NCBI GenBank assembly: GCA_965240325.2 | Contig: OZ251224.1 | Coordinates: forward strand, 992,001-1,056,000 | Direction: 5' to 3' | DNA length: 64,000 nt | DNA from: Rebecca billardiae RCC1528 | Lineage: Eukaryota; Protista; Haptophyta | Shown here: in pieces, positions 54,976 to 62,276 of the stretch | How the letters are laid out: each line of letters opens with the position of its first letter | Position numbering within the stretch: the first letter of the stretch is position 1 | The notes under the pieces: generated by a model | What the model saw: the letters and a program-made list of their open reading frames with translations, nothing else | Database searches by the model: none | Told to the model about the DNA's origin: nothing | Program-made: the position numbers and the translations under genes

Positions 54976-56924
<1,949 letters not shown>

Positions 56925-57537: not shown

Positions 57538-58384
57538 ATGGCTTTCTCCATCATGCTCGCCCGAAGCCTTCGGATGAGGGCGATGACAGTGCCGCACGCC
57601 GCGTGGGTGGCGGGCGTGCGCCGCTTGGCTGCGGCCTCTGGCGCCCGCCAACGCTTCCCCGTCCCCGCGATGGGAGACTCGATCACAGAGGGCACGATCG
57701 TCGAGATTGGGAAGGCGGTGGGCGACCGCGTGGACGCGGAGGAGTTGCTCATGCAGGTCGAGACGGACAAGGTGCGGAGGGCCGCGCCAGCATTCGCGCT
57801 CTCCCTGCACGCGCATCTCACACACGCATGCGTGCATCCCCGCCCGACCCCCGCCCTCCCCGGTGCAGGTGACCATCGACGTGCGTTCGCCCGAGTCTGG
57901 TGTGCTCACGTCGCTCTTCTCACAAGTGGGCGACACCATCATCGTCGGCAACGACCTTTACGAGCTCGAGCTCGGGGAAGGTTCAGCCGCGTCGGCGTCC
58001 GCCACGGCCGATGCCGCCGCGCCTCCGCCGCCGCAGCCCGCCGCCGAGCCGCCAGCAGCTGAGCATGCTGGTGGCAGCGCGCCTGCTGCCTCCGGTCAGC
58101 GCGTGCACCCGTCGGGCAACCCGGTGCTCATCAGCTTCAGCCGCCGCGGAACCGGAGGGGCGACCAGTGAGACTACTGCCAGCGAGGCCAGGGCCCCAAA
58201 AACAGCGCTGGCGACGAGCCCCTCCAGCTCCGTCGGCACCCCGGCGAGCGCGCACCCGTTCACGCTCGCGCCCCTGTGGAGCGCGCAGGACGAGGAGGTG
58301 GTGCGCAGGTACCGCCGGCTGCAGCTGAGCGAGGACGAGATGGCGGTGATTGACTCGGGCGGCGCGGACCACTTCATAAAATGA
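57538..58384 (+). CDS. Mitochondrial lipoyl-domain protein fused to KGD4/MRPS36-like motifs; intron 57772..57868
   Basis: Arg/Ala-rich presequence, E2o-type lipoyl domain (VPAMGDSITEGTI...VETDK|VTIDVRSP), PVLISFSRR and C-terminal RYRRLQLSEDEMAVIDSGGA. No acyltransferase domain. Confidence 0.8.
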
Positions 58385-58683: not shown

Positions 58684-60422
58684 ATGACCGCGTTCCGCGG
58701 TCCTTTTCTGCGTAGAACGAACGTACTGTAGTTCAGGGCCCGCGGTGGCGGTGCACCCTCCGTCGCAGTCGTCTATTGACAGACCCGGAGTTGCATGCCC
58801 GTACAACTAGACTCCAGCGGCGCGCCGCCGCCCGCCGCGCCGCGGCCGGGCGGGCCCATCACACTCTTCGCAGCCGCCGGCGCGGCGCCGATTGTGTACA
58901 GGCGGATGCGACGAGGCGTGATCGACGCATGAGCGCGACTCCACGTGCACGCCAGGCCACGCGAAGCTGACAGCCAGGGAGCACGGTGCGGGGCCGCGGA
59001 TTCGTTCGGGCCGCTGCTGCTGACTGACCGCTGTCCCGGGTCACCGCGCACCGGCAGCGCCAGGATAGTTAGATGATTTGCACTGGTCCGAGTAGGGTTC
59101 GACCAGCGCCTGCGCGACGGCCGACAGGCGGGCGCGAGGCGTGATCGACGCATGAGCGCAACTCTACGTGCACGCCAGGCCACGCGGAGCTGACAGCCCG
59201 AGGGAGCACGCAGTGCCGAGGTTCGAGGGCACCGCAGTCACGGATCGTTCGCGCACGCCGCGCGTGCACGGGCTGACACACCTCGATCAGGCTCGGCACG
59301 CGTTGCAGAGGCACAGCCAGCTCTGGGGACGGCACGCACCACCGTCGCCCGCGCAGCTCGTCCTCCTCGTAGAGTACCGTTCAGTTCCGAGGCGTAGCCC
59401 TCGCTCAGAGTCCACCGTCGCCCGCGCAGTTCGTCCTCCTCGTAGAGTACTGTTCAGTTCCGAGGCGTAGCCCTCGCTCAGAGTCGACCGTCGACGATGG
59501 ACTCGGATCGTCGGCGCTCCCCGGCAAGGCATGGCAAGGGCGGCGCGTGGTGAAGTCGAAGACTCAGAGATCGATCAGTCCGGCATCAGGCGGCGCCGCT
59601 GCCCCCGAGCTTGCGAGAGCCCGAATACAGATTACAGGGCGGCTGCCGCGGCGCGGCCGGGGCGCCCCGGGCGACGCGCGCGGCCGCGCGCCGAGGGGCC
59701 CGTGAGGCATCGACACGGGGCGGCGGGGGCGCGCGGAGTGAGCGGGGGCACGAACGCGATGTCGACGGCAGTCGGGACCCGCCACAGCCGCGCGCTCCAG
59801 GCGCAACTCGCCGCGCGCACCTGCCCATCGCCGTCCTCACCCGTCGGTCGCTCGTGCGGCTCGCCCCGGCGGCTCTCGCGGAGAGTGCGCAGCAACCATG
59901 AACCAAGGTTTGGCTTTGCTGGGCAGCCGTCCGGTCCAGACTCGTGTCAGATCGTATTGAGATACGCCGAAGTTGGCGCATCGGCTACTGACCCTTGCCC
60001 TGTTGGCTCCTGATACAGACACGGCGCGATTGAATAGTTGATTCAACTGATTCAAGGGACGTACATGGTCACATCGGTTCGCGGCAATCTCTATCTAGAT
60101 ACGTCATCGCTCCTTGGACCTTGCTGCAATCTCATTGGCCGGGAAAAATCGCTTGTAACGGTTCGTTACGTTAGGGATCCTAAAGGGCGTGAAGTTTTTT
60201 GGACGGGCGCCACTCCACGCTTTACTATGAACTTGTCGTGGGCGCGACCTTTTTCGGCCGTGATGCGTGTTAGAGAGGGTCTCAAAATTCGAAACTCGGT
60301 CTCCTCCAGCCATGAAAATCGTCCCCCGTCCCTTTTTTCTTGATCAAAGATCTTTTTGAAACGTGGTTAGGGCCCACGGAGCGGGCTCCACGCTGCGCGC
60401 TCCGCCCTGCACCGCGGGCCAT
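58684..60422 (-). mobile_element. Family B Helentron-like element, copy 2, with 73-bp tandem duplication at 59339-59484
   Basis: Same termini atgaccgcgttccgcggtcc... / ...ctgcaccgcgggccat as 28352-30510. Confidence 0.7.
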
Positions 60423-61349: not shown

Positions 61350-62276
61350 ATGACGCCGACCCACGCGCTCGCGCTGACGGTGCTCGCGGGCGCACTCTCG
61401 ACATGCGGCGCGTTCGCGCCGGCCTTGGCGCCAACCGCAAGCCGAGTGCGCGCAACCGCGCTCGGTGGGCGGCCGTCGCTGCTCGTGATGAACGAAGACG
61501 GTGGGCTCAAGTTTAACAAGGCACCGGAGGGCTCGGAGGATGCGCCTGTGCTCGACCAGACTGCGGCGGAGGTGGCGGCGCGCGAGGGCGTGGGGATTGG
61601 CAAGGTGAGCGATGGCGGCGCGTCCGGCTCGACCACAGCCTCGTCGGCGGAGCTCGAGCTCGAGCTTCGCCCGGTCGAGGAGCTCTCGGAGCAGGAGCGG
61701 AAAGACCGCGCGCGCATGCTTGCCATCAAGAAGTACGCACCGTGGATGGCGGACATGGCGACGCCCGAGGCGATCGCGGCGCGCGAGGCGTCGGAGAGGG
61801 AGCGCAAGGCGAACAAGGCCGACAAGCTCGTGGGCAACCGCATCGATCCGGCGAAGCAGGAGGTGTCGGGCGCCGGGCTGAAGGCGCAGGTGAGCATGAA
61901 CGAGGTGGGCGGCGACGTGTCGCTCGCCTGGTACATCGGCTCGGAGGAGGACAACCTCGGGTTCATCGTGCAGCGCAAAGCGGCGGGCGAGCCCGACTTC
62001 AGCCCGCTGTCTAGCTACGAGACGGACGCCTCGCTCCGCTCGAAGGGCCCGAGCGGCGGCTCGTACACGTACGTGGACGCAAACGTTCCACCGGGCAGCT
62101 ACCTGTACAAGGTGCAGGATGTGGCGGAGCGCACCAAGTTCACCACGGACGTGTGCCAGCGCGGGGTGGATATCCTCTCGAAGGAGGAGCAGTCGAGCAA
62201 CCTCACGCTGCTCGCTGGTTTTGGCGTCGTGATGGCAGGGCTCTTCGCCGCGGGCCTGCTGCTTGACCCGCAGTGA
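61350..62276 (+). CDS. Plastid-targeted protein with FN3/Ig-like domain and C-terminal TM
   Basis: Leader ..STCGA-FAP. VSLAWYIGSEEDNLGFIVQRK...GGSYTYVDANVPPGSYLYKV resembles FN3-like domains. TM followed by LLLDPQ. Confidence 0.7.
   Translation: MTPTHALALTVLAGALSTCGAFAPALAPTASRVRATALGGRPSLLVMNEDGGLKFNKAPEGSEDAPVLDQTAAEVAAREGVGIGKVSDGGASGSTTASSAELELELRPVEELSEQERKDRARMLAIKKYAPWMADMATPEAIAAREASERERKANKADKLVGNRIDPAKQEVSGAGLKAQVSMNEVGGDVSLAWYIGSEEDNLGFIVQRKAAGEPDFSPLSSYETDASLRSKGPSGGSYTYVDANVPPGSYLYKVQDVAERTKFTTDVCQRGVDILSKEEQSSNLTLLAGFGVVMAGLFAAGLLLDPQ

Follow-up and report, generated by a model that had tools for sequence, protein, structure and literature searches.

Our analysis identifies a haptophyte gene that joins, in one predicted polypeptide, a lipoyl domain (LD) of the type found in E2o (sucB / DLST / Kgd2) to a tail that profile comparisons relate to the small adaptor protein KGD4/MRPS36. 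The gene lies on the forward strand of the 64-kb window, i.e. the whole stretch of 64,000 nucleotides that was analyzed, and its spliced product of 249 aa contains no E2 catalytic part. The protein is probably a lipoylated, E3BP-like E3 adaptor of 2-oxoglutarate dehydrogenase (OGDH); we infer its targeting, its lipoylation, its partners and the catalytic use of its LD.

The features of the locus are compiled in Table 1. The start codon is the first ATG downstream of an in-frame stop, and the protein runs from an Arg-rich presequence through an LD with the motif ETDK(78)VT and an Ala/Pro linker to RVHPSGNPVLISFSRRG, which is followed by a Ser/Thr linker and by RRYRRLQLSEDEMAVIDSGGADHFIK. The preliminary description of this DNA had listed the spliced presequence, the LD with its lysine, the Ala/Pro linker and the motifs, and all of them are present where it had located them. 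It erred in placing the stop right after SGGA; the actual C-terminus reads ...SGGADHFIK.

Table 1. Features of the LD-KGD4 gene and their positions in the window.
Feature	Position	Strand	Remarks
Two-exon LD-KGD4 gene	57538-58384	+	start ATG 57538; stop 58382-58384 (TGA)
Exon 1: start codon, presequence, N-terminal LD half up to the lipoyl lysine	57538-57771	+	78 codons in frame
Putative mitochondrial presequence, aa 1-38	57538-57651	+	6 Arg, 10 Ala, no Asp or Glu in 38 residues
Lipoyl domain, aa 39-116, split by the intron	57652-57982	+	contiguous Pfam profile across the splice
Lipoyl-attachment lysine codon AAG, K78 in ETDKVT, last codon of exon 1	57769-57771	+	
Intron	57772-57868	+	97 nt, GTGCGG...GTGCAG (GT..AG), phase 0
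Exon 2: C-terminal LD half, linkers, two KGD4 motifs, stop	57869-58384	+	single open frame; Pfam Biotin_lipoyl 41-71, Kgd4-YMR31 64-116
Ala/Pro-rich flexible linker, aa 117-155	57983-58099	+	read from sequence
N-terminal KGD4 motif RVHPSGNPVLISFSRRG, aa 156-172, presumed E3-binding element	58100-58150	+	R, H, P, G, F nearly invariant in 24 tails
C-terminal KGD4 motif LAPLWSAQDEEVVRRYRRLQLSEDEMAVIDSGGADHFIK, aa 211-249, presumed E1o-E2o core binder	58265-58381	+	hhalign vs LD-less KGD4/MRPS36-type set

The intron length of 97 nt is not a multiple of three, so that retention of the intron would shift the frame; exons 1 and 2 lie in different frames, and splicing is therefore required. Pfam models were scored on the two exon products separately, while the full spliced protein was used only in local analyses. 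The Biotin_lipoyl comparison suggested in the preliminary description returns a match in both exon products: exon 1 covers positions 2-40 of the profile with 31.4 bits and exon 2 continues with 41-71 at 14.7 bits, so that the profile is continuous across the junction. Alignments obtained by tblastn with seven E2o proteins break at the same two points as the splice sites, and homologues known from intronless ORFs or from transcripts read ETDKVT without interruption. The intron is also retained in L005, a genomic Logan contig that stems from the same species and is 99.4% identical; the coding sequences of contig and window differ by one substitution, E to G in the linker, which is too little to assess selection. 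Judged by homology, on which the splice rests, this is a genuine two-exon haptophyte gene. A mis-joining of neighbouring genes was considered and rejected: exon 2 alone carries, in a single frame, half of the LD together with linker and tail.

Residues 1-38 have the composition of a typical matrix presequence, which suggests mitochondrial targeting; homologues are alignable only from RFPVP on. Sequence comparisons classify the LD that follows as E2o-type. It is 68% identical to the LD of Diacronema lutheri and 46-57% identical to LDs of E2o, and in a search of 5.8 billion proteins the nearest relatives without the fusion are E2o proteins. For the LDs of five relatives, the best NCBIfam models are sucB/PRK05704 (E2o equivalogs), with a margin over the E. 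coli-type E2p model that is small for some members (69 vs 67.8 bits in Diacronema). The residues T-D-K-V are invariant in 26/26 full-length fused homologues, a sign that the LD is under selection; that the lipoyl lysine never varies in lineages as distant as Discoba, Stramenopila and Haptista speaks for lipoylation being important. Structural information comes from an AF2 model of a relative with 50% identity (P0131, not the window protein), in which the LD forms eight strands with a pLDDT of 93-96. Foldseek matches of this model are solved lipoyl domains, for instance 1ghj (the LD of OGDH; 38% identity, rmsd 1.8 A). The linkers of the model are disordered – the equivalent of the Ala/Pro linker has a pLDDT of about 50-57 – and its two tail elements reach about 62-71 (HPSG..LI.F element) and 85-93 (C-terminal two-helix pair).

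The tail shares with KGD4/MRPS36 the same motif order and spacing, i.e. an N-terminal H-P..LI.F and a C-terminal R..R...S..E...I..GG at the protein end. In the window protein, NPVLISF occupies aa 161-168; LSEDEMAVIDSGGA follows at aa 231-244 and leaves five residues before the stop. Neither the F of LI.F nor the terminal GG varies within the fused family. Whereas the described members of KGD4/MRPS36 are single-domain proteins of about 80-140 aa, the window protein with its 249 aa additionally possesses the LD and the Ala/Pro linker. A further difference lies in the subgroup to which the window belongs, which has VVRRY where LPARF/Y is usual. The Pfam score is low as well: the exon-2 product obtains 17.9 bits (E 0.01) with the model Kgd4-YMR31 (PF10937), whose cut-off is 22 bits, and the closest relatives P0127 and P0131 are likewise under the curated cut-off. 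This is the model that the preliminary description had named S36_mt; the family is the same, but it is now called Kgd4-YMR31. Read to the letter, such a score would come halfway to the missing hit that the preliminary description had named as a refutation.

Homology to KGD4 is settled by three independent tests – an HMM of LD-less proteins, a reverse profile search and hhalign. The HMM comprises 22 LD-less KGD4/MRPS36-type proteins, among them eight named ones from animals or fungi. The spliced window protein reaches 33.9 bits with it, LISF (aa 165) and SGGA (aa 244) being the ends of the alignment; the maximum among 2000 composition-matched shuffles of the tail is 9.7 bits. In this comparison, the N-terminal motif aligns from L165 onward to (K)PH.PLIKF of the HMM. 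In the reverse direction, a profile of 24 fused-protein tails was searched against 1.84 billion representatives and retrieved 261 matches at E<=1e-3. Among the 150 matches listed, 30 have a full or truncated LD and 120 have none; the LD-less proteins have a median length of 95.5 aa and include entries such as '28S ribosomal protein S36, mitochondrial', 'alpha-ketoglutarate dehydrogenase component 4-like' and '37S ribosomal protein YMR-31', the named ones originating from molluscs, an insect and fungi. Finally, hhalign relates the fused tails to the LD-less KGD4/MRPS36-type set; over the 34 columns at the C-terminus the probability is 99.4%, with an E-value of 1.8e-21. On the strength of these profile comparisons, the window tail is homologous to KGD4/MRPS36, and the relationship that the preliminary description had wanted to see in a Pfam hit is thus established by other means, although the Pfam score itself falls short of the cut-off. 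A sequence search of the PDB with the tail profile gave no match at E 10.

The window protein belongs to a family with a common order of elements, i.e. presequence, LD, Ala/Pro linker, R.HPSG.PSLI.FP.RG, a second linker and LPARFRR...SEEEMEAV.SGGA, close to the end of the protein. The fusion, for which the preliminary description had proposed a survey of architectures, recurs in Prymnesium parvum (AB1Y20_022087), Diacronema lutheri (KFE25_000896), Emiliania huxleyi (EMIHUDRAFT_204165, a partial model), the diatoms Seminavis robusta and Pseudo-nitzschia multiseries, Nannochloropsis oceanica (P0207) and Naegleria lovaniensis (C9374_010294, P0244). The last two pass both curated cut-offs (LD 55.4 bits and Kgd4 25.7 bits in Nannochloropsis; 69.4 and 29.3 bits in Naegleria), and the Kgd4-YMR31 cut-off is also exceeded by P0003 (31 bits) and P0185 (23.5 bits). 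All of the 26 full-length fused homologues match Biotin_lipoyl, and 20 of the 26 match Kgd4-YMR31 at E<=0.01. In Tara contigs, both parts are found in single uninterrupted ORFs. Furthermore, two members that carry both parts, P0127 and P0199, are MMETSP transcripts, so LD and tail are co-transcribed in these relatives. As far as sequences can tell, the LD-KGD4 fusion is real and not an artefact of gene models.

Within the family, the C-terminus lies 1-6 residues past GGA in haptophyte-type members and in two Tara proteins (P0002, P0003), while diatom members are about 15 residues longer at this end. The closest relatives of the window protein are P0127 (48% identity), P0131 and P0264 (50%) and the Diacronema homologue (42%), with which it shares the subgroup signature LAPLW.A.DE. 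The host is a GC-rich haptophyte and the gene is nuclear; its closest relatives are Pavlovophyceae-like, e.g. Diacronema lutheri.

KGD4/MRPS36 was recognised as a fourth subunit of OGDH in 2014. This eukaryotic subunit, which also goes by the name YMR-31 (PF10937), has been termed E3BPo in Chaetomium thermophilum (PMC10203282). Pull-downs in yeast recover E3 with the N-terminal part of Kgd4 and the Kgd1-Kgd2 core with its C-terminal part (PMC4214781). [quoted passage not shown] That KGD4 binds E3 as well as the E1o-E2o core, and stabilises E3 on OGDH, is known only for the yeast, mouse and bovine proteins (PMC4214781, PMC9974300). In OGDH from pig heart, KGD4 went undetected (PMC11436768), so that for some systems even the role of the canonical adaptor is under debate.

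Applied to the fused protein, the division of labour described for KGD4 leads to the following model. After import and removal of the presequence, K78 would be lipoylated; the C-terminal two-helix motif would dock on the E1o-E2o core of OGDH, and the HPSG.P.LI.F motif would hold the E3 dimer in place of the PSBD missing from eukaryotic E2o. The Ala/Pro linker, some 40 residues long, would let the LD swing beside E3. This extra LD would be reductively succinylated by E1o and reoxidised by E3, like the LD of E3BP (protein X) in pyruvate dehydrogenase. In E3BP, the LD is a substrate of E1 and E3. We thus expect, by analogy, that the LD of the window protein is an additional swinging arm and not a decoration.

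The two proteins follow a common logic – an LD on a flexible arm, an E3-binding element, a core-binding element and no catalysis – but they realize it differently. E3BP uses a folded PSBD and an inactive core with an acyltransferase fold, whereas the window protein would rely on short linear motifs of the KGD4 type; it has no Pfam match to E3_binding or 2-oxoacid_dh, and its tail is unlike the PSBD+core profile. Beyond the LD, the likeness to E3BP is therefore analogous and not homologous. The idea of an E3BP-like, lipoylated OGDH adaptor was already put forward in the preliminary description. Its structural side is supported, i.e. the fusion of LD and KGD4, the E2o-type LD, the lack of a catalytic core and the E3BP-like layout; the adaptor role itself is what these sequence features most naturally suggest.

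Two other interpretations of the gene have to be weighed against an OGDH adaptor. The LD and the Ala/Pro linker are of the E2o type, and several databases label relatives 'dihydrolipoamide succinyltransferase'; one could hence suspect an ordinary E2o with catalytic exons further downstream, or the pseudogene of a truncated E2o. Both searches for the succinyltransferase core, whose absence the preliminary description had rightly noted, came back blank: the exon-2 product has no Pfam match to PF00198 (2-oxoacid_dh) or PF02817 (PSBD) even at E 10, and tblastn with the seven E2o proteins matches only the LD, with no catalytic domain in the entire 64-kb window including the 5.6 kb downstream of the gene. 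The next plausible gene on the + strand is an ORF at 61350-62276 (308 aa); it starts with a hydrophobic segment and has another hydrophobic stretch at its C-terminal end, and none of the seven queries matches it with its catalytic part. Moreover, the stop follows a conserved C-terminal motif common to more than 25 homologues of similar length, and the contig from the same species differs by a single coding substitution. We consider this first interpretation scarcely credible. A truncated E2o was rejected as well; lacking the 2-oxoacid_dh domain, and with a tail unlike the post-LD part of E2o, the window protein is not an E2o. The other interpretation has the protein serve a different complex, such as 2-oxoadipate or branched-chain 2-oxoacid dehydrogenase, either as an adaptor or to carry a lipoyl group, or makes it a free lipoyl protein with no link to OGDH. 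This interpretation could draw on an ESM Atlas cluster auto-named 'lipoamide acyltransferase component of branched-chain alpha-keto acid dehydrogenase' and on the small margin of E2o over E2p seen for some LDs, such as that of Diacronema. However, OGDH is the sole documented partner complex of KGD4, to which the tail is homologous (PMC4214781, PMC9974300), and the nearest relatives of the LD are LDs of E2o, so that we regard a role outside OGDH as very unlikely.

How the fusion and KGD4 itself arose is a separate question. KGD4/MRPS36 has no prokaryotic homologue, and it has been proposed to have emerged as a replacement of the PSBD lost by eukaryotic E2o (PMC9974300). A widespread form that bears an E2o-type LD offers the first concrete handle on this unexplained origin. 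The preliminary description favoured a truncated E2 duplicate as the source of KGD4. In agreement with this are the E2o-like LD and linker, the placement of the motifs at the positions of PSBD and core, and the occurrence in three distant lineages; the tail, however, does not resemble E2o, since hhalign of the tail profile against the PSBD+core of bacterial and eukaryotic E2o detects no similarity (probability 0.4% and 3.2%, respectively). A route via a truncated E2o intermediate is no more than a possibility.

Phylogenetic analysis of the LDs is based on 76 columns, with long branches and with no lineage-matched LDs of E2o in the dataset. The window protein groups with its closest relatives (100/98), and the haptophyte-type fusion LDs form a clade of their own (97/98, then 93/94). 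LDs of diatom and Nannochloropsis fusions cluster with LD1 of eukaryote-type E2o (92/90), and those of Naegleria and P0199 fall near LD2 of E2o and bacterial LDs. In the free tree, the fusion LDs are consequently not one clade; when a single clade is constrained, the tree is 17.5 lnL units worse, which does not lead to rejection (AU p 0.07). The tree of 76 columns therefore neither supports nor rejects a single fusion origin. The eukaryote-type E2o proteins recovered during the analysis (P0038, P0041, P0045, P0047, P0058 from Mallomonas, and others) have no PSBD and possess two tandem LDs; LD1 and LD2 form separate, well-supported clades.

Two evolutionary scenarios can be drawn from these data. 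In one of them, the lipoyl-bearing form is the ancestral eukaryotic KGD4, a paralogue of E2o whose PSBD and core shrank to two motifs, and the LD was later lost in animals and fungi. We regard this scenario as tentative and rather doubtful. If it held, KGD4/MRPS36 would correspond to E3BP within OGDH not only in function but also in ancestry. The OGDH of many protists would then have a second class of swinging arms, catalytically competent and located at E3. In the other, a small adaptor KGD4 gained an LD of E2o later, once or several times, in some protists; the product would still be a lipoylated adaptor, but it would be uninformative on the origin of KGD4. The tail without detectable similarity to the PSBD or core of E2o is in line with such a secondary fusion, and so are the divergent affinities of the LDs, stramenopile ones going with LD1 of E2o, Naegleria and P0199 with LD2 and bacterial LDs, and haptophyte-type ones standing apart. 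It has to be reconciled with the identical domain order and the presence of both tail motifs in Discoba, Stramenopila and Haptista, and with the fact that one clade of all fusion LDs is not rejected by the 76 columns. The chance that the fusion is secondary appears to us to be not far from even. Based on a thin sample of named sequences, the taxonomic distribution does not separate the two scenarios: named fused forms are found only in Haptista, Stramenopila and Discoba (i.e. Diaphoretickes plus Discoba), and named unfused forms only in animals and fungi (opisthokonts). A root between the fused and unfused sets makes gain and loss equally parsimonious.

A literature search, with most subscription journals outside its reach, found the LD-KGD4 fusion described nowhere. 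Papers on KGD4/MRPS36 make no mention of a lipoyl-bearing form; this holds for a phylogenetic study that covered 304 homologues (PMC9974300) as well as for the one that introduced the name 'E3BPo' (PMC10203282). What is new is the recognition and interpretation of the fusion; the sequences are already public under automatic names, and the pair of Pfam domains is precomputed for many of them. The architecture accounts for a set of database proteins that bear labels such as 'lipoyl-binding domain-containing', 'E2 succinyltransferase' or 'branched-chain acyltransferase'. The OGDH of haptophytes, diatoms, eustigmatophytes and Naegleria probably contains an E3BP-like lipoylated subunit, which would alter the lipoyl stoichiometry and the architecture expected for this complex; among the lipoylated proteins of these organisms, one more band than anticipated would then appear. 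The finding is relevant to 2-oxoacid dehydrogenase complexes and to mitochondrial evolution.

Some variants of the architecture were noticed during the analysis. P0247 (347 aa, from a Logan contig) possesses two LDs before its KGD4-type tail, and these are each other's closest relatives (98/93). P0132 (129 aa, from a JGI metagenome) has a tail of the pavlovophyte type (RLHPSGKPVGIRF ... LAPLWAAEDA ... DSGGAE) and a presequence-like N-terminus, but no LD; it may be a true paralogue without the domain, or else an intron has truncated the ORF call. On a Tara scaffold (locus L004), P0002 is encoded at 1827-2681, between an APG6/beclin gene and a gene for a TPP enzyme of 971 aa. The neighbourhood is very compact and apparently intronless, which suggests the genome of a picoeukaryote. 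In the ESM Atlas, P0002 is nearest to a cluster assigned to Chlorophyta, which makes an occurrence in green algae a candidate lead; a word search with the P0002 tail for named green-algal relatives matched only P0002 itself.

In the window, the gene is preceded on the same strand by an ORF at 55728-56924 (+) that ends in an unmistakable C-terminal half of enolase, so that some 600 bp separate the end of the enolase gene from the beginning of the LD-KGD4 gene. Downstream of the latter, a direct repeat of 64 nt (58912-59198; copies 95% identical and 223 nt apart) is followed at 59339-59484 by a tandem pair of 73-nt units with 97% identity.
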